A stretch of DNA of 64,000 bases, from positions 6,262,001-6,326,000 of the forward strand of contig NC_135765.1 of the NCBI RefSeq assembly GCF_052425735.1. The letters are read 5' to 3'. The notes beneath the pieces are model-generated. The model was not told the origin of the DNA. It was given only the letters and a program-made list of their open reading frames with translations, and did not search any database. The DNA is from Oculina patagonica (lineage: Eukaryota). The position numbers and the translations under genes were made by a program. Positions 5,625 through 64,000 of the stretch are shown piece after piece; position 1 is the first letter of the stretch; every line of letters starts with the position of its first letter.

Positions 5625-8600
5625 TTACATGTTCTTCATCTCTTCGTCCAAGCCAATCTTCATACCAATGGACAATGGCAGCTCTGACTTGATGTCTTCC
5701 CACAGTTCCTTGAGGGCTTTAACCGTGTTGATCTCCTTTTTGCGCAGGTCTTCCAACACAGCTTTCTTTCTTCCTTGGTCAGTCCAGTTGTACTTCTTCT
5801 GAACACGAGCGAAGAATTGCTCCACACTCTCCCCACCACTGGAAACTCCTGGGGAAAGATTGAAAAATAAGAGAGCGCTGTTAATAGCTGCGCATGCACA
5901 AGATCTTTGAGTTGTTCCAAAATATGATAAAATACGATGAGAGTTACAGAAGTCTATTGATCAACAACAAACAACAACAAAAAGCTTTATTTAACTCTAT
6001 AATTTTACAATGTTTTTCACCTCCCAAAATTAGTGTAGCTATTTGAGGCGGGACAGTTGAAAACAAACAGGCTGGTAGAAAATGCAGAAAGGACAGGCCT
6101 TCGGGCAAATGTCGGGAAGTGCAAAGTCTTGAGAGTCAATGCAAAGAATAATGAAGCCATCACAGTGAATGGTCTGGCGTTGGAAGGTGTAGAGAAGTTT
6201 ATTTATCTAGGAGCCACAGTATGTAGGCAAGGGGGCGGAGAAGAAGACATCAAGGCTAGGCTAGGGAAAGCGAGGGGAGCGTTTGTGAAGCTAAATCGAT
6301 TATGGAATTCCAGCAGTGTGTCGAGGAAGACGAAGATCAGGCTATACAAAACATTGGTCAAACCAGTTCTCATGTATGGTTGCGAAACATGGAAAATGAA
6401 CGAAGGTGATGCTAAGAAAAATTAAATCGATATGTTTCAGAACCGATGCCTGAGGAGGATAATGAAGATTAAATGGCAAGATAAGATCAGTAATAGAGAG
6501 GTACTGGAAAGGGCTAACGTGGAGAGGTTGAGTGAAGAGGTAAGAAGAAGGAGATGGCGATTTATTGGACACATCCTCAGACAACAACCTGACAATGACT
6601 GTGTTACAGCCCTGACATGGACCCCAGAGGGAAAGAGAAAGAGAGGCAGGCCAAAAACAACCTGGCGGCGCACAGTAGAAAAGGAGAGGTCCAATGCAGG
6701 GTGGCAGTCCTGGAGAGAGGTGCGCACTGCAGCGCAAGACAGGAATCGATGGAGAGCACATGTGGAGGCCCTATGCGCCAACTTGGCGCCAGGGGACAGG
6801 TGAAGGTGAGGTTTGAGGCGGGAGGTGAAAGAGAAAATGAAAACATTATATTTACACAATGACATTAAATAATCTACAATAAAGAAAAGAAAAGAATTAT
6901 AGTAATATTAACGATGATAATAATACTATTAATAATAACACTAATGATAAAAATAAAAATAATTTAAGATAAAGATTTCAGGTAGTCAGTGAGGGAATTA
7001 ATTTCAACATACTCGTCCTCAGCTAAAAGTAAATCAAACATTGTTTGGAATTGTTTTTCGGAAAATTGTCTCAGGTTTGTCTCTTAAGGCCGATGCGATA
7101 TTGTTCCAGAGTAAAGTTCTGAAACGAGAAAAAGAACGCTTTGAAATTTCCAGCTTTGCATCTCACCGGCTGATAGTAATCCCCATTTGCTGCAGATCTA
7201 ATATGTATCGGTGAACTTCGTTAGATTTTATAAAGCGAACTCGAAGAGGTAATGGTGCAGATCCATGAGATATGTCGTGCGTTAAGTTTGCGATGGTTTC
7301 AAAATAAATCATGGTTACGTGTAAAATTTAGAATTGATGATTTAACGAAAAATGGAATGTTATGACATGCCCATTTCTAAGGGTAAAACATATGAGAAGA
7401 AGTACACGTTTTTGGAGGATTAGGAGCTTGTTGATAAGACATTTGGAAGCGTGACCTCATACACATATCCCATCGGTTAGGTAGGGTAAGATCAAGGAAC
7501 GATACATCGTTAGAAGTGTCTGTGTAGGGACAGGATGTCGCAGTCTGGCTATTGATGCCATGATTATAGCCAGTAAGAAGGCTAAAAAACGTTTACCGGT
7601 TAGCATTAGGACGCACTTAGCGAATCTGATCTGTTCTCTCATTGTCTGTTCACTGATCAGTGGAAGATGCGGACTCGGCACTGAAAGGCAAAATGATTTA
7701 TAATTTTTTGGCTCACCTCCAGTCGTGACCTCCCTTTCCATTTGATTCTTCTCTCGCTGCTTTTTAATTCGAATAAACCTTTCAGCGGAGAGCAAAACAG
7801 AATCCAGGATGTCAAGAGCGGTTCGATCAACTTCGAAGGATCGCTCGTCATCCACGTGTGTGTAATTTGCAATGAAGTAGGTTCTCTCGCTGGAACTACC
7901 AGTTGCCCAGGACGCCTGGTCAAAAGCTTCATCTTTATCCTCCTTTTCTTTCAGTCTGTCAAGATAAGTAATCACCGTCACAGGAGCATAACCTGTAAAG
8001 TGAAGGAACGGTTATAAGTCACAGGAGCATAAACTGTAATGCAAGGTAAAGATTATGAGGCACAGTAGCATAATCTGTAAAGTGAAATAAAAGGTTATAA
8101 GTCAGAGGAACAAACTCTGTTAAGTCAGTTAAAGGAAGGACGGGAAGGAGGAAAGGAGAGAGGGAGGGACAAGCGATTAAAATTAAAGTAAAGCGAGGGG
8201 GGGGAAACAAAGTAAAGAGGGGGGAGGGACAGGAGGTTAAATCTCCCTCCTCCCTACTTTTTGAATTAAAATTTCTCCCTCCTTCCAATTCTGTACCTCC
8301 CCCCTCAGTAAAGAACAGTAATGAGATTAAATTATCAAATACCCCTTCATGCAGATATGCAAAAAGTTGACGGTTTTAAAAGACCAGGTCTATAATAGAG
8401 TAAACCATGAAAATCAAGCGCCCCACCCCAGAACAAAATGTTCCAACGAGTTCCCCCTAGGAACTTCAACTTTGACATTAAAGCTAAAATTAATTTGAGC
8501 TAAAAGGTTGAATTTTTTTCTGGCCCATATTGCTATTACCATCTTGTCGAAAGTGCTCTCTGATCTTCTGGAGTGTGTCCTTGTACTTGCCATCCTTCAA

Positions 8601-21200: not shown

Positions 21201-22974
21201 CAAAGGTTTGTTGCATTGTGCAAAGGTTTAGCTTTATTATCTCAGAATTACTGGTGTCATGTGACCTCGACTCTCTATTAGGCGGACACCTCTCTAAGAC
21301 GGACAGCTGCGGCCGGTCCCGAAGGTGTCCGTCTTAGAGAGAGTTGACTGTATTCAAACCCTCATGAAATCCCACACGCACAGAAAACGTCACTGGAATC
21401 GAATTCAGTGACATAACCTATTTTGTCACAGTCTTTCTATTTCCTGTACCCATTTTTCAGTAATGACAATTTTATGAACTAAAACTGGCAACATCGATCA
21501 CTGAGCGCGCATCGCGTGACTTTCATTTACGCTTGCGTGACTGAAGAGTAAGGAAAATATAAACTATAAAGAGCTACTAAAATATTGGAGTTATTATTAA
21601 TGCCAGAAAACGGTAAATCAATAAAGAGTAAATTTTGTATTTAACACCAAAAAAAAAACACGTCAGCGCTCAAAATAAATTAATTACAAATTCTTGGTTT
21701 TCATGTTACGTCATAAAATTCTGAAATCAAAATTCACTAGGCCTACTACATTTTCGTTGTTATTAGACGTATAAAGACAAGCTAAAAATATATCTTTTTG
21801 CAAATTTCCAGATCGATAGTGTCATTCGTTTTTTAAACAGAGCATTTTGAATATTTGAGTTCTCCGTCGTATGTGACATCAAGCTTGTTTAAAAAAAAGG
21901 CCTTTCCTTTCCATTTTCAGCAGATTGAACATTTCAGATACAATAAATGGTGTTTATGTGAAACTGTACTAGCTCATGAGCCAAAGATTGCCGCTGTTGT
22001 AAACAGAATTGAGTTCCAGATGGTTTCTCTGACATCACGGCGGCCATATTTGTGTACCTCGGAAGGACACAGTTATGGCATCTCCATACTAAGCTTTATA
22101 AATTTGCGTGGAAAGGTTCGGCAAATAACTCGCGAACGGTACACCGCACAGACCTGAAACTTGGAGAAATTGTTTATCTATTTATCGTCTATAATATTTG
22201 AAATTATAGCTTCAGTTCTATAGTTGAATGGTTTCGAATTTATTTTTTGATTGCGTGACAGTGAAATCCAGCAATTGCAAATGATCGAACAAGTTCCAGG
22301 AATTCGTTACAACCGGAAGACGCGTTACCCGGAAAAGCCAAGAAACCTAAAGAGGAAGACTTTCGGTTTCATTTACCTACTGCAGTACAAATGTCACGTT
22401 CTTTTCCTTTATTATTCCTTTAATTTATTTTATCTAGTGAAAGGGATTAAAAATACCGTGACTTTGCGTTTTATTGTCGAGGATGATTGCGAAATGTACT
22501 TTGTACAGTTCTAATGAAATAAGAAACTCTAAGGTCAACAACATCTTTTCGCTTGATGTAATATATTTCGGTCTCAGACGAAAGCTCTTGTATTCTCTAT
22601 TCATCCGAGAATTCGCCGATTTGCCCGCCGCTTTAAAACGCTTGTGTTTCTGTGACTGAGTGAATGAAACATATGCAGAAACGCACTTTGCATTATAAAA
22701 TTAATAGTTTCGATGTCAACTTGTAAAGCACGACACACTACATTTGTTATTGGTGCAAATTGCCGATATTCCTCTTAATTTTGCTTGGCTTTCTTGTGAA
22801 ATCATGTTCGACTTCGTGCATACGTTTAAAACACAAGTTTCACTTTCAAACGAAGCGAACACTCGTGCACGCTTGTTTGCAGTGTTTGGACAAAAAGAAA
22901 CCAAGAATAAGCTGGAATTTATATAATTATTCAAATTTTCGTGTACTCACGATTTTGGAATCGCCGTTTCCCAT
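15234..22974 (-). CDS. G2: IFI44-family GTPase with N-myristoylation-type start MGNGDSK, coiled coil and SAM-like C-terminus, 433 aa; close paralog of G1
   Basis: Exons 22951-22974, 20089-20482, 18874-19054, 17673-17875, 16245-16520, 15234-15457; exons 2-6 have the same lengths as in G1 (394/181/203/276/224); 1302 nt open. Confidence 0.9.
15740..15950 (-). mobile_element. Second tRNA-derived SINE family
   Basis: Minus-strand tRNA-like head (tggtttagggcgctggtattgtaatccggaggtccccggttcaag) followed by a non-tRNA body. Confidence 0.65.
16030..16165 (-). mobile_element. SINE 5' fragment (11298-11600 family)
   Basis: gtggagagaaagggcactatgagagtaaagtg...ctaaccatcaagccaccgcgcctcc matches the full copy. 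Confidence 0.75.
17245..17488. mobile_element. MITE with imperfect TIRs
   Basis: cagggccgggttgttcgaag...taacccaggatt versus aatcctggattagc...tttgaacaaccgggcccag. Confidence 0.65.
20768..21350. mobile_element. Tc1/mariner (pogo-like) MITE
   Basis: TIRs CAGTCAACTCTCTC...GAGAGAGTTGACTG, TA on both sides, internal repeated GGACACC; absent from the paralogous G1 intron. Confidence 0.85.
22294..22370. promoter_or_regulatory. G2 intron-1 motif cluster: GAS TTCCAGGAA (22294-22302), CCGGAA cores, ISRE-like ACTTTCGGTTTC (22359-22370)
   Basis: Same motifs and order as in G1 intron 1. Confidence 0.6.
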
Positions 22975-49523: not shown

Positions 49524-52500
49524 TCAAACAGTTTCTTTTATTTCCAGTTCTATGATCTGCTTCAAGCCAATCGATAGTGGCAAGTCTTCCTTGACTTCTT
49601 CCCACAGTTCCTTGAGGACATTGACAGTATTGATCTCTTTTTTGCGCAGCTCCGCCAGCACAGTTTTCGTAGATCCCTGGTCAGTCAGGTGGTGCCTTTT
49701 CATTAAACGGGCGAAAAACACCTCCACAGTCTCCACTCCACTGATAGGTCCTGGGGACATGTATATTTAATTAATTGGAATATTTTAGGACCGTAAACTT
49801 GTAAGAGGCAAGACAAGGCACTTGCCTCGACTAGATTTTAACCTCAAAGTAAAAGAAACACGTCCTGCTTGATAAACACCTTATAAAAATGCAAAAAATA
49901 GTGTCTCAGAGCTTCTAGATTTCAAAATTTTCTTTCCAGCGGACCCCGCTAACGGATCGTGCCTTCGACACACGACTTTTGCCTCGCCTTTGCCAAAATT
50001 CTGGCTACGGCCCTGTATTTTGGACAACGTTCATTAGCAATGTTCGGAAATTACTAAATTATTTGTTCTAACGTTCGGCTAAACATTCATACCGACAGAT
50101 TTGACTATAAATTGCTGCGAATTGCCGGATTCACATTCTCCTTTTTGCCCCCCTCCCATCACGCCACAGTAGAGTTCTAGAAAATCAAATCGCTAAGTTT
50201 TGTTGGGCGTCCTCATTTTTCTATGAAAATAGTTAGAGAAGGCTTTTTGTTTTGTAAAAACAAACAAACATTACAAACAAACAAACGAACAAACAAACAA
50301 GAAAAAGCATTCGGCTCGGAAGGGGAGAGTTGAAGGGGAAAGACGTTTTCTTATACAGTATACACAGAAAATCAAACTACGTTACCTCCAGCCATTGCTT
50401 CTCTCTCCAACTGATTTTTCTCTCGCTGTTTACGAATTCGTATGAAGCGTTCAGCAGAGAACAAAGCAGAATCTAAGATGTCAAGAGCCGTCTGTTCCAC
50501 AGCAAAGGACGTCTTATTATCATTGTGTGTGTAGTTTTTAATAAAGTACGTTCTCTCGCCGGGGCCACCAGTTGTTAGTCGCGCCCTATTTAAAGCTTTC
50601 TCTTTGTCCTCTTCAGTTCTTAGCCTGTCTAGGTAGGTAATCACAGTCACTGGAGTGTAACCTGTTAATTAAAATAAAACGCACACCTTAGCCTTGTCAA
50701 CCCAATCCTGAACCCAACCCATCAGTAACGTTCAGCCGTACGCAATCCTGCAAAAGAAAAAAAAAGATGGCTGCCGAAACGTTTACCTAAAACACTAAAA
50801 ATGTTCATAAACACGTTCACTTGGAACCTGACATACGAAATGGTGCTAGTACTGGGACGAAATGTGTTTTTTGTGCCTACAATTTGTATTAGGTTTGCAT
50901 GTTGTTTTGGTGAAATGTACGAACACCATCGGTTTTACTTATGGTGGATATCTATAGACTAAAATCAGTAACGCAAGTTAGTTGCGTCGCTCCGTAAGAA
51001 CGCCTCGTCCCCAGGCGTCGCTCCTTGGTCGTGCGCGGTGCACTTTGTTTTGTGGGATTGATAGTGTGCCGTTCGCTTGGCGTTGTGGGACTGATGCAAA
51101 CGGGAGGGCGGCGGTTCGCACCCTAACCACCTTCCCCCGCGCTGTTTTCTCGCCTTCCGCCTGGCCAAACGGCGCCCGGGGACGAGGTAGAAACAAAAAC
51201 AAAAAAAGGATTATTTTTTATCGTTGATTTATCTAGTTATTACCATTTGTCTGAAAGTGGCCCCTGATCTTCTGAAGTGTTTCTTTGTAAGTGCCTTCCT
51301 CCAATCGAGGATCGTTTGCCTTCAAAACGAAAATCACAGCGTGTGCATATTTAGAGAACGCTGGGGGTTTTCTTGCCACGGCGACTGGCTCCCGACGTCC
51401 ATCGTCATGCTTCTTTCCAGGGTTGTCATAGTCTCTTATGACTTCTTCTCCAATGCGAATTCTTCAATAAAAAAAATAAAGAAACTCAGGTCTGAAGTAA
51501 TAAGATGTCGTTTAATTCTGGATTCTGTAGCATTAAGTACCTAGGTATATTACTATCTTCCCTGGAAAGGATAGTAGTCCATTGTAGGTGACCCTGTCCA
51601 AACTGGGCAAGGTTGTCAGATTGCTCTTACAGTTTTTACGTTCGCCGGTTCCCGTTTGTATGAGAGACCCCCATCAGAGACCCCCATTAGAGTAAGCCTG
51701 TGTTCTCACTTGGTGCCTTGACACGGTGCCCGAGTACGATTCTCGCTGGACACTTATGTGAACATACTATCTTTTCAAGTATTTACTCCATAATTCGGAC
51801 ACGGTGCCTGTGCTTGATGAGACCTTGCACTCCGGCACGTAAAGCTACTTAAGGGTACTTGGGTACTTTGGTTTTCTGTGTCTAAACACGACGCTAGTTT
51901 TTGCCGGTGCTCAGGTACCAGTGCTCGTGCACTGAGTGTGAGCACGGCCTAAGATTTTTAAAAGAGTCATCTCTAAAAACAATACAAGACCCGGTCATGA
52001 CTAAACTGAACCCAAACGAGGTAAACTGATAAAGTGCTTGAGAAAGTCAGATTTGGTAACAAAGCAATTTTGAGATATTCTTGAAATTCCCTTTTTATAA
52101 TATGAACTAAATGACGGCCACACGCGACCCTCCCACTCACTCTCACTCAAGCCCTTAGCCCTGGGTAAAGCATATAATAGGCCACTGACGACCCCCATCC
52201 TCCATCGGCTTCTGTCCTGGGCCAGCCTTTCCAGTGTGGTCCAGGTGTGGCCGCAATCGACCCTTCCACTACAATATACAAATAACTGACCCATAAAACA
52301 CATTACCTTCCCGTCATAATGTTGAGACATTCATCAAGAAGCTGTTCGTCACGCGCAAAAAATCCTCTGGTGTCCACCATTCGAATTTTTTTCTGCACGT
52401 AGTATTCTTCGAGAATAATATTGCCCTCTCCTCCTGTTCCTTGCTCAAAGGCGACCTGAGGCTCGCCGATAGCTCGCTGCAACGTGCCTAGTCAAGCCAA

Positions 52501-53967
52501 AGAAATCCAAAATTTAATTAGCAATTGTATTCTGATATAAGAAGGGCAAATACTACACTCCGTAGATACACTTTACAGTACTGCAGTTTCGCTGATTAAC
52601 CGATTGCCCCGATGTGTTCATGGTATATGGCAAGCTTAAGACAAATGGGAGACTACCTACTTTTCTACTTTCAAAGTAGGTAGTCTCCTTAGTGTGAAAG
52701 ACCCCATCCCTTGTGGTCTCCCAGGATCATGTGTGGTTAATAAATTCTCGTGTGCATGCTGTGCAGCTTGCTATGCCGGTGAAACCTAACGATAATTCAT
52801 CACACGTATAAGAGAACACCTAACAACGGACAAGGCATTGCACATTTTTAAACACCTTCCAAGCTCAGAAACATTCCACTCTGTTTTCTCACAGGCCAAT
52901 TTTAACATCATCGATCAGGCCTCCTCAAAGTTTGCACGCAAGATCAAATTAAAGAAGCTCTTCTGAATCAAATCCGTTGGCTAAAACCAACACTTAACGC
53001 ACAAGCTCATCACGTTAATTTCAAACTTTCTGTTTAGTTTACTTATTGTTACTGTTCTAATTATTTCTATTATTATTGTAATATTCTTTTCTGTTTTTTC
53101 ATTTATTGTAACCTTGTTAAAATCACACTGGACATAGCAGATGGTTTTGCCGAAACATGTTTGCAAAACTCAAAGATGACGACTACCTTATAACATTGTA
53201 AAAGTACGAACGGGAATAAGATCTTCCCACTATCTTATATTTCTTTTGACTCTTTCGTTTTTATACACGATTTATTTCATATATTCATCATTCCATAGCA
53301 AACAAAGCTGTAGTTCGGGAGACCATTTTGTAGGGCCAAGAAAAAAGTTCAAGTCATAACTTAATTAGAGAGTTGTATGCGCCTAACAACGCTAATCAAA
53401 TCGTAAATAAACAGAGGTTTAAGGTGTGCTTCCTCTTCCTCAATGATTTACATGATATGCAACTGATAATGCCCGTAATGTAGCTATAATGCCCGTGATG
53501 TAGCTATATATAGCGTTTTACAGTCGACCAATGAGCACAAAGGAAATTTGACTCATAAAATGCAAAAACCTGTTCTTACCCACAAAACTGGTTTTTCCCG
53601 AACCTGTTGGTCCAATTAACGCAATGCGCACCAAATCAACGTCATCCACCTCCAAATCACGAAAAGCTTCTTTCTTAATTCTGGGGCACTTCTGAAAGTC
53701 GTAGTTCATCAGCTCGCTTTTAAGTTTGAGAAATCGTTCTTCTTCCTTTTGTTGTCTTTCTTTTTCCTCTCTTTCCCGTCTTTGGTGATCTAATTTTCTT
53801 CTTTCTTCCTCGTCTTCAAGTTTTGCGCTTGTTTCCGCGTCACGTAACGCTTGTTGACGCTGTTTCTCCATCTCGTCAAGCAGTTCTCTCATCTTCCCTT
53901 CATTTTCTTCTTGGGCTTTCCGCTGACCTTGCTCACTCGCTGCGGAATCTTCGCTTCCTGAATACCA
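49524..53967 (-). CDS. G5: coiled coil + IFI44-family GTPase + SAM-like domain (429 aa from these exons; start lies further upstream)
   Basis: Exons 53580-53967, 52307-52487, 51244-51461, 50386-50661, 49524-49750; same intron positions as G1/G2, 1290 nt open. GPTGSGKTS, DTRG, HAVIFV, VITYLD, FIKNY. Confidence 0.85.
52130..52250 (-). mobile_element. RTE LINE 3'-terminal fragment
   Basis: WTTLERLAQDRSRWR motif followed by a GAGT-repeat tail. Confidence 0.65.
52710..53180 (+). mobile_element. Decayed Penelope-like element (GIY-YIG endonuclease remnant)
   Basis: Translates with stops and shifts as VVNKFSCACCAACYAGET..TRIREHL..HIFKHL..FNIID..KEAL..KPTLN. Confidence 0.7.
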
Positions 53968-54814
53968 CTTATAAACAAAAACATAAACAAATGTATGATT
54001 TTTGAAATAACAAGGAAGCTGTAGTAGATAAGATAATACAAAGGACTTTTATGTTGTGTCCGGGGAAGGGGGGGGAGGGGGGGGGGGGGAGGAAGAAACT
54101 TCCTTTGTTACACCACTAAAAAATGCGGCATAGCGGTGCCGTGCAACCAAGTGTGCGCATTAGCTATCGAATGGTTGCTTAGGGCATAGTGAATAGCTTG
54201 ACAAAGTTCTTTGTTTGGCATGTTTTGGTCTTGACCGTGAGAGGTACATATCATGTAACTTTGTTGGAAATAAGATTGTCTTAAAATAACGATGCTGAAA
54301 AATGGTGTGAGTTAAATTAACAATGACGTAAAAACTACAATGATTCTGAAATGATTTACCATTTCAGTACACATTAATCAAGTAGAAGACAGCTGTTGAC
54401 TTGTTGTGAGGGGGATTTTACAGGAAAATCTCCGGTCAGGTTGAATGAAGGAAGGACATCCATGTTATATGTTAGTGAAGTGTCTCCAAGTTTGAAACTC
54501 AAATTAGACTTGTTGGAGTAGTGAATTATGCCCGCAGACAATTAATTTGGAGCCGTTTCTATTAAGGATAATTGAAGACGACATTTTGCAATAAGGGATT
54601 TTGAAGCATTTATTAAAGCTAAATGGTAAATTTTATTAGGGCAAAACAGCTGGATTGAAAAAAGTTGTTATTGCGCATTTATAACTAGTGCCAGCCCCAA
54701 ACCACGTGTTATTGCAAGGCAAGGCTATGGGTAGCATAATGTGAATAAATTCATTGTATCAAATCATGAAAATGAATAGCTTAGTAGTATGACCACTTGA
54801 TTACAGTATTTTTT

Positions 54815-54978
54815 AAGTAATAGTAGTAGTAGAAGGAGGAGGAGGAGGAGGAGGAGGAGGAGGAGGAGGAGAAGAAGAAGGACGAGGAGCGGTAGCGGCA
54901 GTGGCAGCGGCAATAGTAGTAGCAGCAACAGCATCAGTAGCAGCAGCAGTAGCGGCAGTGGCACTGGCAGAAGTAGTA
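54815..54978. repeat. Compound (AGT)(GGA)(GCA) microsatellite
   Basis: Directly visible trinucleotide runs. Confidence 0.9.
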
Positions 54979-55983
54979 TTCGTTGTGTTTAAAAAGACAT
55001 GGTTGGAAATTTCCCTTTGCAAGTTATCAAAACTTTTGTAAAAATAAATAGCTCTTCCCTTCAAGTACCTCCCCCCTGCCCTCCCCAAAATTGCCTTGAT
55101 AAGATACGTAACGTCCCTCTGAAATGGGCTTATTTTCGGTGAGGGCATATATACGGGTGTCTTATTTATTTTCGGGTGAAAATTTGCGTTTCCAAAGTAT
55201 TTGTTTTTCTATTTCGAAAGGATAATGTACTGGGGTTGAAACGTTTTTGGTGCATACAAAAATTCCACATGGTAAAATCCTTTAGTCATAAACACAAAAC
55301 AAGTCCTACACCCGTGAAACGAGCATTACAGGTTTTTGAGCATTCTTTATGCAACGTAAAAAACAAAAACAAGCTCTACAATAGGGGCTTATTATCGAAA
55401 AAGTTAAAAAATATCTTTCTTTAAGAGTTATTTATAATTATAAGCCCATAACCTTAACTACATTTCCTCAATTTGAAGTTGTGCTGATAAAGAAAAACAG
55501 AAAACACATGGCTAGGCTCAACGTCACGTTGGCGTGACACTGGTAGTGCGTGTCTTACTGGGTGCATCCATGCACGAACTATTTTCATTCTCACTGGAAT
55601 ACTTGGGAACTAATGAACAGAAGAAATAAAAATCGGAGCAAAGTGGCTTTTTATTTTTTTTAGTTGAGTTTACTGAACAGTAGCTGCCAGGAGCGGCTGT
55701 GAAGTGTAACTGAAACCGTTTTGGCAAAATAAACCATTTTAAAATACCGTGTTCAAGAAAGACTATACCGGGGGTTCAGTTCGTCTACAACGCAGGCCAA
55801 CTGCTTGTATAGTCATTACTGCTAGTATTAGTATAGTTACGAAGTTTGTGTCACTGATTCACATTGTAAAACCTCGAGTACAGTTTTTCTCAATACGGAC
55901 CTCCGGGGCGGCAAATAACATATTTATATCCCACGAGTCACTTGTACTTTCTCGGTATACACACGAGCCTTTAGGCGAGTGTA

Positions 55984-55999
55984 TAATAATAATAATAAC

Positions 56000-56068
<69 letters not shown>

Positions 56069-56076
56069 AATAATAA
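55984..56076. repeat. (AAT)n(GAT)n microsatellite
   Basis: Directly visible. Confidence 0.95.
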
Positions 56077-56341
56077 CAGGGAAAGTAAAGCTTCAGAAAG
56101 GCCTCCTGAGAGGAAAAACAAACTCGTGAATTCTTCACATGGGAAATACAAATTTGTACATTTAATGAAGCTTAGATGCAAATTTGTGGTGCATACCCAG
56201 AACGCCATGCAGTCTTGCCATTTAGCTTTAAGCTTTGACCCGACAACGTTTATTGAAATATATACATATTTACATATATACATTATAATACATTTTACAT
56301 ATAAATAGTAAAGTAATAAAGACTAATCTACAAATGATTTA

Positions 56342-57372
56342 CAGTGCGGCTACTGTAACCGGGGTCACCCAGACAAAGTTAGCTTCAGCCAATGAAATGT
56401 CGAGTACAGAACAAAGAAATTTCAACTTCTTCGTTCGCCACGAAAACAGATCGATACAAACTTTGGCTCCGGCGCTGAATTTTCAATTAATTTCAATTGC
56501 ATCCGTTTTGAACTTGAGTGGTTGTGACAGCAACATTTGGAAGGTAAATATTAGCGATGTTTATGTAAGAGAAGTTCGAAACTGTGTAAAAACGGGGAAA
56601 GAAACGACCCTATCGTCTGTGTCAAATGGTGCGTGGCGGAGTTCGCTCGTGACAATTTCAAGTTTTCTCTACGGCATCAACTGGAGTTTTGCTAGCTGTA
56701 CCATTTGGAAAATAAATACACGTGATGCTAGCGAAGGAAGACATTCTGCGCTGTATAACGTACCAGTGAAAGCGACGGTCATAGGTTAGGCAAAGTGCGT
56801 GGCGTATTTGCAAACAACGAAGCACATTACCAGCGTGATAAATTTAGTTTTCTGCGATGTCCAATCGTTGAGTTCCACCGAAAGCGTATCGGCCGTATAC
56901 ATCCGAAAGTTTCGGCAATTCAGCTAGCTTGAATAAACACGCAAAAACATAAGCTTCACGAGTGAACAAATACCAAAACTCCAGTTGATGCCGTAGAGAA
57001 AACTTGAAATTGTCACGAGCGAACTCCGCCACGCACCATTGACACAGACGATACGGTCGTTTCTTTCCCCGTTTTTACACAGTTTCGAACTTCTCTTACA
57101 TAAACATCGCTAATATTTACCTTCCAAATGTTGCTGTCACAACCACTCAAGTTCAAAACAGATGCAATTGAAATTAATTGAAAATTCAGCGCCGCCATAC
57201 GGCCAAAGTTTGTATCGATCTGTTTTCGTGGCGAACGAAGAAGTTGAAATTTCTTTGTTCTGTACTCGACATTTCATTGGCTGAAGCTAAAAATGTAGAA
57301 ATCTTTTGTTTCAGTTCTGCTTTGTGATTGGTTAACTTTGTCTGGGTGACCCCGGTTACAGTAGCCGCACTG
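56342..57372. mobile_element. Foldback-type TA-flanked element with ~350-bp inverted arms
   Basis: CAGTGCGGCTACTGTAACCGGGGTCACCCAGACAAAGTT at both ends in inverted orientation; arms ~56342-56690 and ~56975-57372 nearly identical apart from a short indel. Confidence 0.88.
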
Positions 57373-57719
57373 TAAAATATAATTTATCTAAGAATTAATA
57401 AAATATTTATAAATATGTAAAATATCCTACGATATAGTAAAATGATGAATATGATTATAATAAAGATGAGATGTTTAACATGACACGTGCATGGGACAAT
57501 CGAATCGAACCCATGGCCTCCCAGATAGGACTTCAAGAAATACTTATATAAAGACTTCACTTCAGAATTTCTAAACTAGAGCTACTCTTAATTTCATTGG
57601 GAAGCGAATTCCAAAACCTAGTGGCGGATACTTGAAAAGTCCTAGCACCTTCTGATTCTCTTTTATTTGTTTATATAATAAGAGAGTAGATTAACTATAG
57701 AAATTACATTAGCACCCAC

Positions 57720-58919
57720 ATTCTCCACATATTTGGTTTCAACCTCTTCCACATAGTCAAACACACATTTCAGCTTATTGGAGTCCATAAATGCACTCTG
57801 GTCAGCATCTTTCCACTGTTACGATTAAAAGGTGAAAAATACAGAAAAATTGTTAATGACCAAGAAACTCCCTCAGTTCTTTCTTTTGTTTATTTGGACC
57901 AAGATGATTAAGTCAATAGAGGTTGCGAAAAACTTTCCTAAACTCAAAATTTGTTATTGATACAATTAATTAATAACTGGACCTTGTGTTGTACAATTAA
58001 AAGACTAATTGCACTCATTATCTCAAATTGAAATTACTTGCCTGATTACTCCCCGGATTGTAATCCACTCAATACAATTATATTTGTACTATTGCTAATT
58101 ACCATAAGATTTATGAAAAAGATCTTGAGATGCATTTAATAAATGATTTTTATAACCCATTGGCGCCTGTGCCAGCCAAAACTGGCCCTGACGAACTTTT
58201 CCCTTTATTCCACTTCTGATGTCATCATCTTTGACCAAAAAAGGCATCACTTACTGAATACTCAATCTCTGCAGGAGGAAAAGGTTATTCCAATGATACT
58301 CAGATTAGAGTGACTGGGTCAATTGAGCTTGAAATGTACACAAAAAAAGTCTTAGAAATTTGAGTGAAAAACTCGTACGAAATTTGCCTCAACGACCCTT
58401 GGCTCCTCAATGGCAAGAATTTCCCGTTTGGGTGATGCTTCCATAGAAATTCTTGAACTGCAAGCAAGCCTAGTGGAAGGCCAACAACTGCAGCAAAAAG
58501 ATGAAAAAAGGAAAAGCGACGAAAAATAGAAAAACAAAAAGCCCGAAGTGGTAAGGCACTTACTCCTCCAAAAACTCAAAGTTTTTATTTGTGCGCATGC
58601 TTGAAGAAAAATGCCATAAAATGCAATGCTTGTGGAAAGAAAGGCATACTTTCATGTTGAAAATGCCGTTTCAAGTAATCCGGAACAGATTTAGCTCGTC
58701 TGACCAGAAAATGTCAAAAATGTCCAAAAAAATAACATAACTTTGCATAGTAGTACTGGTAGGGTTTGCAGCACTAGAATTCTTGCAGTGTAACACATTT
58801 TAAGCCATCACATACCAATGTTTCATGATCAACTTCTCCTTCTGGTGCAAACATTGTCTGGATCATGAATTTGTGTATGTTGTTTTCCTTTGGATCATAC
58901 TCAAATGGCTGCAACATCA
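57720..58919 (-). CDS. Two exons encoding the C-terminal half of a VAP-type MSP domain (58816-58919, 57720-57815); candidate 5' exons of G5 or a VAP gene relic
   Basis: [34 protein letters not shown] | [32 protein letters not shown] aligns with VAPA/B [26 protein letters not shown]...WKEAKPEDLMDSKLRCVFE (recalled); clean AG/GT ends; too short to appear in the ORF track. Confidence 0.78.
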
Positions 58920-60421
58920 CTAAATATTGACAAAACAACAATACTTAAGCAAACTGGACAAGTTATAAAGGTAACATGATGAACAACACTCTTGATAAAA
59001 TTATCCTAATTTAGACCTGACTTTTCACTGTACAATTTGCTAAGAACACTTCTAGAGCTACATTTGTAGTCAGAAGTGACAGAAAGATGCATAATGCCAA
59101 CTTTGCGAAATGCAAACCAAGCCCACTCCAGATGATACACCGACTTACACTATGTCCATAAAAAAGACTTAAGAACAAAATTAAGGTTTACTTTTTAAAT
59201 TATGTGGTTTGAAAAGGTGGCTGCTTATTTAACATTTGTGCAAAAATTGAACCACTGTTCTTTCTTAGTTAAATGCCTGGGGTATTAATTTATATTTACT
59301 CCTGTAGATCCATCATTAATTTGGGCCCAGAGTTTTACTGTGTAAGGAAATATTCTAGGAAGGTCATTTTAAGAAAATTCACAGGAGAGAAAATTTTGAA
59401 AGCCAAAGTTTTTTTTTCAACAAATGTGTGAAGCTAAACGAGAATTTCCAGAGGATGCAGGATGTGATAGGGGGTGGATATTTTCTGAAAAAAAGAAAAA
59501 CAACAACAACAAAAAAAACACATTAAACAAGAGGATTTTTCATCATTTGACAGCCTGGATGTTTGCCACTAATATTAAAGGTGGCTCGAGCCAGAATATT
59601 TCTAGCGATACCTACCAACTTTGAACCCCTTATACCTAAAGAGCTTAATGTCAATGACGTATCTATTATATCACATGGATTACACATAGACTGAACTGCA
59701 ATATGATATAAATATTTTGGAGATCGAAATGAACATCATGTGCGTTAATGTCACACAAGTTTTAGCTCAGAATCGAAGTTAAGCCCGTAGCCGCATTTTC
59801 TCTCGAGATCCTCCACACTACATATACCTTGGGTGTTTGGCTTCAGCTCTGCGGAGTTTCATCGAAATCTACAAGAGGAATTTTGAAATACCTTGGAATT
59901 TCTATTGAAATGGTATAATTTCTGCGTAACATAACGACAAGACTTCATATAAAGAAATTTGCTACTTTCTAATGTTTAATGAAAGTCTTTAGTTCTAATT
60001 CCTTTACAAATGTCCCATTTTACGTTATCCAAACCGTTAGAAGTAGGTAGACTTACGCGATTTCGAAAATATGAAAATATATGAATCAGAGTGAAGCTCA
60101 ATGTTGAGCTTTATTTACCTTATGTCAGTCTCGGGCCAAGCACACAGCGGTCAAACGCAGCGCGCGTGCGCAGTTGCTGTGTTATTCCCGTCAAAATTCT
60201 TCATACAAAGTCTTAAATTTTCCGAAAACTTTCGCTTTAAAGCCAAAAGTTAACGCCGTCCCTGGAAAGTTAAGGTTTATACGCCGCTTATGGATTGGAA
60301 ATTTGATAATTCATCTCCACTGAGTGTCCCAGCTTGAACTGTTCTTTCACCGTACCATTTCTTTAACAATTTCTTGCAAAAGTTAGCCCACTTTCGAGTC
60401 AAAAGTTCGAAGCGGCAAAGA

Positions 60422-60436
60422 CCGGATGTGACGTCA
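60422..60436. promoter_or_regulatory. ETS-like plus CRE composite CCGGATGTGACGTCA, candidate promoter for the MSP-G5 transcript
   Basis: Perfect TGACGTCA next to CCGGATGT; downstream on the minus strand are donors near 60056 and 60118 and a clean 41-nt exon-like segment 59828-59868. Confidence 0.4.
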
Positions 60437-60465
60437 ATTTTTCCGTTTGACCGCTGTGAACGGGC

Positions 60466-62704
60466 CAAGAGTGTCCCCCGGCTCTCCGGTCAGCGGTAGA
60501 TCAGCGGTAGGGCCGAAGGGAGACACTCTGGAAAACTGAAATGTATTCCCTTTTTTTATTGGTCATCCACAGAACAATAGAAATCCACCAGGAAGTCTAA
60601 AAATGATCCCCAGAAGTTAACCAAACCGTAAAAACCCTGGAAAAACATTCTTTTTGTTTTCGATGGTCAGACGTTCGAAGTATCAACATAACTTTAACTT
60701 TTCTTTGAACACACCTTAGGACTCGTGATATGGCGCTACATAAATGAAGTATTTTCTAATGGTACCCTTCTCATTGAACTCAAAATATACCATGAATAAA
60801 AAAGACTTCTTTTAAACGGCGTTTCTGAACGGAGTCTAAAAGCAACAACGACGGCGACACCGATTGGCGACACAGAGGACAAGGTCGATTGAAAACTTAA
60901 TTTATAGTTGACTTACAAATCTCGCTAGACATACTGTTTCCATTCAAATATCCGTTTCGGCTGGAAAACTAAATATCGAAGACATTGTTCGATTCCAGGT
61001 AATAACTTATGGCAATGCAACGCAGAATTTGAGCACATTAGACACACTAAGTCGCAGCGACCTGTCGCCTAGTGTGTACTGTTTCAAAACAAGTCGCTGC
61101 GACAAAGCGTTTGTTCGGTGCGCAAACAGTGAATTTGGAAAAGTGAGAATGCGAACTAGTTTTCCAATTCAATATGGCGACAATACATGACGGTCTCTTA
61201 TTGGATAATTTATATTTTGTCGAAAATTTGTCGCAGAAGTGTACACACGCTGCGACAACGCTGTTTTTGCTCATTTTGTCGCTGCGATGTGTCGCACGAA
61301 TTCAAACCAGTTTGAATTCGTGCGACACATCGCAGCGGCAAAATTCTGTCGCAACGACTTGCTTGTCGGGACTGGGAAATTTATTTGTACTCGCTATTAC
61401 GTGTATTTGTTGGCTGAGCTATCGAATTTGAGTGCGAATTTTTTTTATATAATTAAAAAAATAAGAAGCCGAGGTGCAATCTGGAATCACCTCCCCCTTA
61501 GGTTACGCACCTCTTCATCTGTAAATATCCTTAGGAATGCTTTGTATAAATATTTTAAATTAAGTCAGCTCAAGAATAATGTTTTTACTCCTTTTTTAGA
61601 TAATAACTTTTAGATTGTGTTATTTAGTAATAATTACCTTTGGATCAATATTGTAGATTAGTTTTTAAATTTTTAACTTACATTTCGATTTTAAATTAGG
61701 TTTTAACTAAATTTTAAATTAGATTATTGTTTATAGTGGATTCTTAATTTTTTAGTACATTAGAGAGGGCCACAAATTTATTAGTTGTAAAACTATTACG
61801 TGTAACCCTCTATAAATAAAGTTTGATTGATTGATTGATTGATTGATTGAAATTAAATCTCCAGTTCACGTTGTCTTCGGCTTCGCCGTCGTGATTTCCG
61901 AGCAGTATTTCTTTGGGGTACCACAGATGTCTTTTGCAGTGAAACACGTTTTGCTTTATGGGGAGAGCATAAATAGTAGTTTTGACCAATTTCAGCGAAA
62001 ATTGCATAAATTGTCCAAGTAGGTGGTACAGATCATCGTAAATCTGGCAAAATTACGGCCTAATTTGATATTCCAGCTAGTTAAAAAGAACAACGGCGCG
62101 AACTTATTGCACTCAAATTAGACCAGTCTATAGTTCAAAGACTGTTGTTTCGAGGATCGAGATCTCCGATGAAAGCTAGTTGAAGAAGTATGATTTTTCG
62201 GCTACATTCCAGAGGCGGTACCAAATTCTTCGATGTGGAAGTTGCATGCCTTGTGTAAATATTTGTATTCTGCACACGAATCGAAATTTTAAACTCCCAG
62301 AACTGCTCTCGCGCGCTATAAATCGCCAAGAAAACGGCATAAAAACAAACCTAAACAATGCAAAAATATTTCTACCTTATTTTATTACAATTAAAAGTCG
62401 TAAAAGACGATTTTAGAAAGCTTTAATGTATTTACAATAGCAATTAGTGAAGAAATTTGAATATTCATATGGGCATGCTGTGACTTCACAAACATAGGGT
62501 GGTAAGCCTGTGCTTCGATAAATACCACTTCCCCCGATAGTGTGTTAGAAATAGTTTAACTTTCTCGATTTACTTCCGTTCTGGGAAATTTACTTCCGCT
62601 TAGACCTAAGAGCAGCCGCAATAAAACCTGAAAACGATTTGATCAATTCCATTTTCCCAGAATCCGTCCCGCACCGCTGACCGACGGACTCTGGGCTCGA
62701 GATT
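60466..62704. mobile_element. Second copy of the 41163-42452 Mutator-like element, left TIR truncated, with nested insertions
   Basis: Colinear similarity 60466-61040 vs 41170-41710 and 62540-62704 vs 42250-42452, ending ACTCTGGGCTCGAGATTG. Confidence 0.8.
61465..61850 (+). mobile_element. CR1/L2-like LINE 3' end with (TTGA)n tail
   Basis: RGAIWNHLPLRLRTSSSVNILRNALYKYF, AT-rich 3' region, AATAAA, then TTGA repeats. Confidence 0.7.
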
Positions 62705-64000
62705 GACCTTAGGTGTGAATTCGCGGTTAAATCCCAGGCTCAGAATTTTAAGATTGCCGATTTATGGCTTTCTTTTGAAAGATACAGAGAAAATTTCAAC
62801 TGGAGCTGATTTACGATAGAAACGTTTAATTACCTAGAAATACCCGTGGTATGACCGACCTAGGCCGGCAAATAACGTTTTTATTTTTTTCTACTTTAAT
62901 TTGTTTGGAAAAGAAACCATTTTTGTATACGCGCGGATTTGATTTGATTTGAGTCCGACTCGATCGACGAGCAAGAGTGAAGAATGCTGTTTGCTATTTA
63001 ATGCCGAATAAAATCAGCTCCACTTAAAATGAACCGTACTCAAAAAAGGTTCAGCATATTCAATTTACACTGCAGAGAATAAAGAAAAGCAAATGAAGTC
63101 ATATTAAAATATAGCACAAATATGCTGCAAAACTTAACTCATTTAAATCGATTTCAGTCGGCTTCCCGAACAATTCTCGATAAATGTTTTGAAAGAATCT
63201 TTGCTCACAGGGTGTAAAGCCTATTTCTCTGACTCATAAATACTCTTTGACTGGAAAGCAGTATTTTAAGCTATTCACACTTGTATTTAACAAATTAATA
63301 ATCTCTGCACTTTTCCCAGAAGAATTTTATTCTGATAAACAGTGCCAAACTGAATGAAATGCGTAGTGTCTACGTACGGCACAATATTGTGATTATTAAA
63401 TTGTCCGTTTATAATCAAATAATCTCATTTCCTTGCATAGGCGTACGAGGCGGGGGGGGCGAGGGGGGCTGCAGCCCCCCCAGTGCCGAAATTTTTCGGG
63501 CAAAATGCTTGGAATTCGGGCAACAAGCCTAGCGAAAAAATAGAAAATAAGCCGACAAATCTCACTAAAACGTTAAAAACTAATTACATCAACAGAAGTA
63601 TTGGAAATCTACCGAGCTTTGTGGTTCAAAAGTCCAAACTGGTTTCTCATTCACCTGCTTTCCTTTCCTTTTGCAAATTACTGTAATCATGTTCGATTTT
63701 CCTTGCAAATTCTGCGTGATCACTCAGTTTGATTCAGTTGCAATCAGCTTTTCTATAGCTTGAGCGTTTGCAAGCGGTGAACCCAGTGTAAGACCTTGAA
63801 ACAAAGCTGTTTCAAATGTGATGGAGCTGATGTTTTTCTCAAATGTTAAGTTCTCAGGGCAAGCTTAAAACTTTCGACCGATTCATCCCTTATGGTTTCA
63901 CACGCTTTTGTGCAACTTGCAAGTGGGGGGGGGGGGGGGGGGGGAGGGACAATGTAAATTGGCTTGCCCAAAGTACTTTAATTTTCGCTGAACTAGGGTG

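Follow-up and report, generated by a model that had tools for sequence, protein, structure and literature searches.

A duplicated VAP MSP domain spliced in frame onto an IFI44-like GTPase gene in the coral Oculina patagonica, probably a young chimeric gene

Overview of the Chimeric Gene

This study concerns a chimeric gene in the coral Oculina patagonica, part of which lies within a 64,000-nt stretch of contig NC_135765.1 (called C8 below). I will refer to that stretch, C8:6262001-6326000, as the window. Positions given without a prefix are counted from its first letter, and those above 64000 are window-equivalent positions, which continue the count past its end. All exons discussed are on the minus strand. 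In this gene, exons encoding the whole MSP domain of the housekeeping protein VAP are joined by in-frame splicing to G5. This gene belongs to a tandem array of GTPase genes, and its five coding exons are called Ea to Ee. I consider it probable (roughly 0.6) that the locus is a young, lineage-specific, expressed chimeric gene, in which the MSP domain would change the mechanism by which an IFI44-like GTPase is recruited.

An earlier examination of the letters of the window (the original prediction) had proposed that half of a VAP MSP domain was fused to G5, to give a product of ~495 amino acids. The in-frame splicing to G5 stood, being found in transcript contigs from four runs and three studies. 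The half domain and the length did not: two further MSP exons lie just beyond the window, and the four MSP exons together give a predicted product of ~566 amino acids. If translated, this protein would consist of the MSP domain, charged helices, the IFI44-like GTPase and a SAM-like tail. The predicted peptide at the fusion junction is ..KYVEN|WYSGSEDSAASEQGQR, and the predicted tryptic peptide across the junction is YVENWYSGSEDSAASEQGQR.

Exons of the MSP Domain

The two MSP exons within the window are real, as the original prediction described them. Read from the sequence, exon 3 (58816..58919, 104 nt) has tttag before it and gtatgt after it, and exon 4 (57720..57815, 96 nt) lies between aacag and gtgggt. 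That they encode the C-terminal half of a VAP MSP domain also held up: together they match the Pfam family PF00635 (Motile_Sperm) at profile positions 65-105 and VAPA and VAPB chains in PDB (E ~1e-16 to ~4e-16). [quoted passage not shown] Its 5' end is not a translational start, contrary to the earlier claim that the exon begins with an in-frame ATG. Directly behind its acceptor the exon opens with TG, and the G needed to make this a GTG (Val) codon is the last base of exon 2. The ATG thus encodes the internal Met conserved in VMLQPF.

The remainder of the domain lies past the end of the window. A whole-genome profile scan placed PF00635 positions 16-64 at C8:6330626-6330772 (E 1.6e-12), on the same strand, 4.6 kb past the window end and 9.7 kb upstream of the exon inside the window to which positions 63-98 map. 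The scan found two VAP-type loci only, this one and a gene on contig C4. The N-terminal MSP exons 1 and 2, which include the sequence MAKTEQ, thus lie outside the window, 4.6-4.9 kb from its end; their strand and splice phase agree with those of exons 3 and 4. Exon 1 (C8:6330889-6330946, window-equivalent 68889-68946, 58 nt) reads ATG..MAKTEQVLKLEPSTELRFRG and ends at the donor gtaatt. Exon 2 (C8:6330625-6330777, window-equivalent 68625-68777, 153 nt) matches VAPA structures (E 3e-19) and ends G|gtaagt, in phase 1, which fits the TG at 58919. The 3' part of the intervening intron 2 fills 58920..64000 and runs on past the window end to exon 2; blocks within 59130-59502 share 81-82% identity with the same intron in the C4 VAP gene. 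Joined together, exons 1-4 (58 + 153 + 104 + 96 nt) form an open frame of 137 amino acids encoding a complete MSP domain, and all four retain canonical splice sites. The captured half domain, the internal ATG start and the length of 495 amino acids all arose because the edge of the window cut off exons 1 and 2.

In the chimera, exon 4 stops at the donor AAT|GTGGGT in phase 0 and so fits the acceptor of G5 exon Ea at 53967, likewise phase 0, as had been predicted. There are two in-frame exon-4 donors 12 nt apart (57708-57720), and transcript contigs show use of the proximal one, GTGGGT. Comparison with the C4 gene identifies 57708..57719 as a 12-nt extension (VGAN) reaching to the ancestral VAP exon-4 donor. 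This distal donor reads GTAAGT in C4 VAP, where it is used, and GTAATT in the C8 copy, where it is used by none of the joints listed, which were all but seven.

Transcripts across the Junction

Transcript data were taken from assembled contigs of four runs (guessed to be RNA), belonging to three studies and carrying three organism labels, aligned on 53400-59000. The two junctions that the original prediction had offered as a check, 58816 to 57815 and 57720 to 53967, are both present. The joint between 53967 and 57720 occurs in all four runs, at depth 32-44, and skips 3752 nt with GT..AG borders on the minus strand. The joint between 57815 and 58816 also occurs in all four, with copy-specific contigs at depth 37.4 (X2) and 32.1 (X5). 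In the 691-nt X2 contig, 109 nt taken as Eb are followed by Ea, by exon 4 in full (96 nt) and by 97 nt of exon 3 in the letters of the C8 copy. The X5 contig contains the whole of exon 3 and, judging from the lengths of loose ends, ~155 nt more. The first 30 letters of that extension appear to fit exon 2, with C8 letters at three diagnostic positions in a two-read consensus.

Contigs of very high depth (up to 1432) also cover the MSP exons, with a likeness of only ~92%. They run to 57707 and then into exon 5 of the C4 gene (C4 locus L015, ~1934), and their loose end on the upstream side is exactly exon 2 of C4; they therefore represent the true VAP mRNA. A 22-mer spanning the chimeric junction is absent from the 529-Mb genome assembly, allowing up to two mismatches, and the joint is therefore the result of splicing. 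The joined form did not come from a retrocopy. JGI metagenome contigs gave no exact match to the junction.

The original prediction had raised two ways in which the MSP exons might have nothing to do with G5. One was splicing to a terminal exon of their own, for example 55524-55609. No listed joint reaches this candidate, where coverage is zero or ~5, and I rejected it. The other, that the exons belong to a separate VAP gene starting beyond the window, was half right: the unit does start beyond the window, and it runs into G5 rather than to a 3' end of its own.

Origin by Partial Duplication of VAP

The C8 locus is homologous by blastn to the C4 VAP gene, introns included, with 81-89% identity. 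The homologous block extends from window-equivalent 69255, some 300 bp ahead of the start codon, down to 57677, some 30 nt beyond the donor ancestrally used by exon 4. It takes in all four MSP exons, intron 1, and parts of introns 2 and 3. The last 30 nt (57677..57707) mark the breakpoint of the duplication, which falls in VAP intron 4. When the 12 kb downstream in the C4 gene were compared by blastn with 48000-70000, nothing matched beyond 57677, in keeping with the earlier failure to find exons for the VAP coiled coil or transmembrane segment. Divergence between the C8 and C4 copies is 0.13 in non-coding sequence, dS (synonymous divergence) is 0.11, and the MSP proteins are 87% identical. 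The C8 locus is therefore a fairly recent partial (5') duplication at the level of DNA, which carried over the promoter region and the whole MSP domain without the linker, coiled coil or membrane anchor of VAP. The ~300 bp upstream of the VAP start codon contained in the duplicated block also bear out a fallback suggestion of the original prediction, that a VAP duplicate had donated its promoter.

Replacement of the Lipid-Anchor Exon

Canonical paralogs of G5 have a separate first exon of eight codons, MGxxxS (of the N-myristoylation type), which is joined in phase 0 to their counterpart of Ea; for the coral clade of this type the exon can be written MG(N/G/S)xxSK. The protein ACROYT_G027428 (P0107), for example, starts MGNGDSKI|NYETVD, and MGN exons at 22974, 38095 and 48454 belong to G2, G3 and G4, respectively. 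The absence of such an exon for G5 was noted at the outset, and a regular-expression search from 53968 to window-equivalent 84000 likewise returned no MGN-type exon.

The closest non-self relative of Ea is found on a 2-Mb ENA contig from another coral, at a locus (L017; ERZ25067872:ctg20998, 278114-298674) that is syntenic with this one: exons Ea-Ee are followed by a gene for a HEPN_DZIP3/TRADD-N/GTPase protein, and the GTPase is intact. There the first exon of the G5 ortholog is MGSGNSKT (at 7986, 2.1 kb before Ea), and no MSP sequence lies within 10 kb. Between G5, whose GTPase is also intact, and this ortholog, dS is 0.39 and omega (the ratio of nonsynonymous to synonymous divergence) is 0.25. 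The orthologs' dS is thus about three times the divergence of the VAP duplicates, and therefore the capture of the MSP domain is younger than the split of the species, and an ancestral lipid-anchor exon was replaced. The syntenic cluster is also usable as an outgroup for the whole GTPase cluster.

Proposed Mechanism

A 5' portion of the housekeeping gene for VAP (promoter region, 5' untranslated region, start codon and exons 1-4) was copied upstream of G5. Exon 4 is spliced in frame to Ea at 53967 because VAP exon 5 and all that follows are missing and both phases are 0. The MSP domain takes the place of the paralogs' 8-codon MGxxxS exon, and I propose that the G5 GTPase would no longer be anchored by lipid. 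It might be recruited instead through the MSP domain to FFAT-type motifs, whether in host contact-site proteins or in pathogen proteins that mimic them, and it may be driven by a VAP-type promoter in place of the paralogs' own. A switch of recruitment seems the most economical mechanism, because the MSP domain sits where the paralogs carry a myristoylation-type signal and comes without the membrane anchor of VAP.

Whether the domain could still bind FFAT motifs may be judged from the contacts described for VAP-A: K50, V51, K52, T53, T54, P56, Y59, V61, N64, S65, K94, F95, M96 and K125 (PMC7705450). The double mutation K94D/M96D abolishes FFAT binding by VAP-A (PMC7705450). The C8 MSP domain keeps 13 of the 14 contacts (K43, V44, K45, T46, T47, P49, Y52, V54, N57, K87, F88, M89 and K119), including K87 and M89, the equivalents of K94 and M96, a degree of retention that is not significant in that only ~1.4 changes would be expected by chance. 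A crude scan of the fusion for an internal FFAT-like motif, through which the protein might bind itself, turned up no convincing candidate.

A bolder version of the proposal, which I regard as improbable, is that the MSP domain would serve as bait; the original prediction, too, had suggested an integrated decoy. Anchorless and cytosolic on an immune GTPase, the domain would trap proteins with which viruses or intracellular microbes mimic FFAT motifs (or such proteins of the symbiont interface) and so trigger assembly of the GTPase, making it an animal counterpart of the integrated decoys of plants. The changes KSK to NNI and S58G near the FFAT groove might in that case reflect an arms race.

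Selection and Alternative Explanations

Several observations weigh against a functional fusion protein. The comparison with the true VAP gene on C4 that the original prediction had called for gave a pairwise omega of 0.57 for the MSP part, with 18 amino-acid differences and one inserted codon. When changes were polarized with mammalian VAPA as outgroup, seven substitutions (G58, V62, N83, N84, I85, I90 and D108) and the inserted N fell on the C8 copy and two substitutions on the C4 copy. The omega of the C8 lineage is therefore ~0.8, near neutral. The change at the one FFAT contact not kept, S58 (VAP-A S65) to G, and the replacement of KSK83-85 by NNI, with the loss of two lysines beside the FFAT-binding strand, point in the same direction. 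The survival of the open frame is not significant either (the probability of no stop under neutrality is ~0.45), and I have dropped it as evidence of selection. As to the transcripts, assembled contigs give neither isoform proportions nor transcript ends, and no single contig in the four runs was seen to span exon 1 through Ea. In the 781-nt X1 contig, Ea is joined to exon 4 and the sequence then continues unspliced into intron 3 (57816-58000); therefore a form exists that retains intron 3 or starts internally. Finally, a collection of 5.8 billion proteins yielded no protein combining MSP and GTPase, no match that carried PF00635 or was ~566 amino acids long, and no fused gene model from O. 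patagonica itself.

The evidence from sequence for selection on the MSP part thus appears mixed, and it bears most directly on the idea that the chimeric transcript is as described and the MSP domain a drifting passenger, the VAP duplicate having given its promoter, 5' untranslated region and start codon to a G5 without a first exon of its own. I judge this unlikely, though it is the foremost of the alternatives. The presence of the VAP upstream region within the duplicated block and the lack of a first exon or upstream homology in G5 would be expected from it, as would the near-neutral omega and the 8 out of 10 polarizable changes on the C8 copy. Furthermore, the capture is recent (K ~0.12-0.13, as against a dS of 0.39 to the other coral), and decay may not yet have happened. 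Drift does not as readily account for the indels. Alignable non-coding sequence has suffered 29 indel events in 1269 nt, whereas the 411 nt of coding sequence have suffered one, in frame, and there are no frameshifting indels in the MSP exons where ~3.4 would be expected from the rate in flanking non-coding sequence (p ~0.03). A contig from organism C (the run label) has a further in-frame insertion of 3 nt in exon 3. The retained FFAT contacts and the canonical splice sites at all four exons speak on the same side.

It is more doubtful still that there are two genes, a truncated VAP-like gene with its own 3' end (at 55524-55609, say, or inside intron 4) and a G5 that starts from the ATG at 53892 (MRELLDEMEK), with the junction a minor read-through or an artefact of assembly. 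That ATG is indeed in frame within Ea, a GT is still present at the ancestral exon-4 donor (57708), and Logan contigs lose rare variants and can join paralogs. The unspliced X1 contig and the failure to retrieve a fused gene model would also be accommodated. However, the junction recurs in all three studies at a depth well above the 0-10 of intronic contigs, exon 4 has no other partner among the listed joints, and coverage of 55457-55830 is at or near zero. Contigs with copy-specific letters on both sides are not paralog chimeras, and G5 on its own has neither promoter-type homology nor an MGN exon. Least probable by far is the version originally put forward, with only the C-terminal half of the domain, started at the ATG of MLQPFEYDP. 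It agrees with the window taken alone, in which there is no upstream MSP exon, and a transcript beginning in intron 2 or 3, such as the X1 contig hints at, could use the internal Met. Against it stand exons 1 and 2, with their matching phase and intact splice sites, the AG acceptor directly before 58919, the X5 contig with its extension into exon-2-like sequence, and a duplicated block that runs without a break from the VAP promoter into intron 4. The reading that I prefer remains a complete MSP domain spliced onto G5 to make an expressed chimeric gene.

The GTPase, the Chimeric Intron and Neighboring Sequences

The five coding exons of G5 are as follows. Ea (53580..53967) encodes a charged helical region and the P-loop GPTGSGKT, and its acceptor is positioned as in the paralogs. 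Eb (52307..52487) encodes the switch regions, with DTRG, and is followed by Ec (51244..51461), then by Ed (50386..50661), which contains the end of the GTPase domain and a long helix, and Ee (49524..49750), with the SAM-like helical tail and the stop codon. Exon by exon, G5 is 42-85% identical to the paralog P0107; relative to the paralogs of the cluster, Ea-Ee show identities of 60-85% and the same exon structure. The annotated genes ACROYT_G027428, ACROYT_G027429 (G3) and ACROYT_G027435 all map to C8.

The AlphaFold model of P0107 (pLDDT, the predicted local distance difference test, 78.5) begins with two long helices, after which come a GTPase domain, another long helix and, at the C-terminus, a bundle of helices (residues 368-432). 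Its best structural matches in Swiss-Prot are the GTPase halves of human, chimpanzee and mouse IFI44/IFI44L (E 7e-12 to 5e-10), with GIMAP/IAN proteins behind them, and in PDB the best matches are GIMAPs. The match to IFI44 is restricted to its C-terminal half. Pfam scans of family members and of the G5 exons gave only weak matches to MMR_HSR1 and IIGP, and in those scans there was no TLDc domain such as vertebrate IFI44 possesses. Going by the modelled structure, the GTPase domain of G5 is predicted to be of the IFI44 type.

The chimeric intron between MSP exon 4 and Ea (53968..57719, 3752 nt by the transcript joint) contains microsatellites and a foldback transposon and no supported exon. 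The region bears no similarity to the regions upstream of the paralogs G1 and G2. Triplet microsatellites (runs of CCT/GCT and ATT/ATC type) are found at 54811-54978 and 55978-56082, and bins near them have very high summed depth from unrelated loci. The foldback-type transposable element (56338-57376, ~1.04 kb) has perfect termini of 44 nt and inverted arms that are 96-100% complementary. Some 40 near-full-length matches to one arm were listed in the genome, and because these copies are 94-97% identical across many contigs, the element is young and possibly still mobile. Joints inside it, labelled as on the opposite strand, were seen in contigs of all four runs.

Past the window lies G6 (C8:6331719-6335573), a tandem copy of G5 with 77-85% nucleotide identity, annotated as the 228-amino-acid ACROYT_G027435. 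Homology to G5 extends only up to 53614, so that most of Ea, the P-loop exon, is lacking, and there is a frameshift in Ed; G6 therefore appears to be a pseudogene. It lies ~770 bp upstream of the VAP-derived start codon, and the VAP copy thus sits between G5 and G6. About 80 kb past the window there is another Ea-type exon (C8:6406332-6406715), 89% identical to Ea of G5 and with one in-frame TAG. This is probably, to judge from the sequences, the 104-amino-acid ACROYT_G027437 (88% identical to Ea of G5), and it may represent either the missing 5' portion of G6 or an additional paralog.

Comparison with Known Systems

The locus is a clean and datable case of gene birth by exon shuffling, in which the duplicate of a housekeeping gene gave a promoter, a start codon and a folded domain, with the help of matching intron phases. 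If the MSP domain is a passenger, there is still a tidy case of promoter capture. If it is functional, it would offer a handle on whether coral pathogens target the contact-site machinery of the endoplasmic reticulum (ER) and on how IFI44-like GTPases are recruited to their sites of action. The biochemistry of these GTPases is poorly understood, even in mammals. The kind of event is known, and this particular combination is absent from the protein collections and the literature searched. An all-against-all search of representative proteins returned mostly single-exon fragments. In the papers searched there was no MSP-GTPase fusion; the one in which "MSP domain" and "IFI44" occur together appears to be an unrelated study of blood-expression networks in amyotrophic lateral sclerosis.

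Compared with VAPA/VAPB, represented here by the C4 VAP gene, the C8 copy has the complete MSP domain (PF00635), likewise divided among four exons by introns at identical positions, and in the fusion too the domain is followed by a helical segment resembling a coiled coil. The fusion differs in having a GTPase as partner and in lacking the linker, coiled coil and C-terminal transmembrane anchor of VAP. Without that anchor it cannot be an ER-resident tether. The changes in KSK83-85, S58G and the inserted codon are private to the C8 copy, which by polarized changes has evolved ~4 times faster than C4.

With the coral clade of proteins like IFI44/IFI44L (ACROYT_G027428 and the "interferon-induced protein 44-like" of Montipora), G5 shares exons Ea-Ee, GPTGSGKT, DTRG and the SAM-like bundle. 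It differs from them in having the MSP domain in place of the MGxxxS exon and a promoter region of VAP origin, and from vertebrate IFI44 in having no TLDc domain.

The integrated decoys of plants, nucleotide-binding leucine-rich repeat receptors with integrated domains (NLR-ID), resemble the fusion in architecture only, a host domain that is often hijacked by pathogens being fused to a nucleoside triphosphatase (NTPase) of an immune family. Here the NTPase is not an NLR, and binding by the MSP domain, control of the GTPase, and targeting of VAP by coral pathogens are hypothetical. In mammals, VAP is reported to be targeted by norovirus NS1/2 and by ROP1 of Toxoplasma (PMC5513711, PMC12669048).

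Other parallels come from the same GTPase family, in which other modules have been exchanged at the N-terminus. HEPN_DZIP3 and TRADD-N precede the GTPase in ACROYT_G027429 (G3, of the same tandem cluster), and TIR_2 precedes it in P0081 (732 amino acids), which makes three kinds of graft when MSP is included. Like the MSP graft, the other modules stand before the GTPase's second exon. Other corals have conserved the HEPN form, as proteins of 757-758 amino acids predicted from contigs of ~2.9 kb. Because all three modules occupy the same position, the N-terminus behaves as a site at which targeting or effector modules are swapped, which makes a functional graft plausible but also permits the present one to be seen as one more domain combination. 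The HEPN and TIR grafts are typical immune or death-fold effectors; the MSP domain, in contrast, comes from a housekeeping contact-site protein, and its graft is recent and found in this lineage only.

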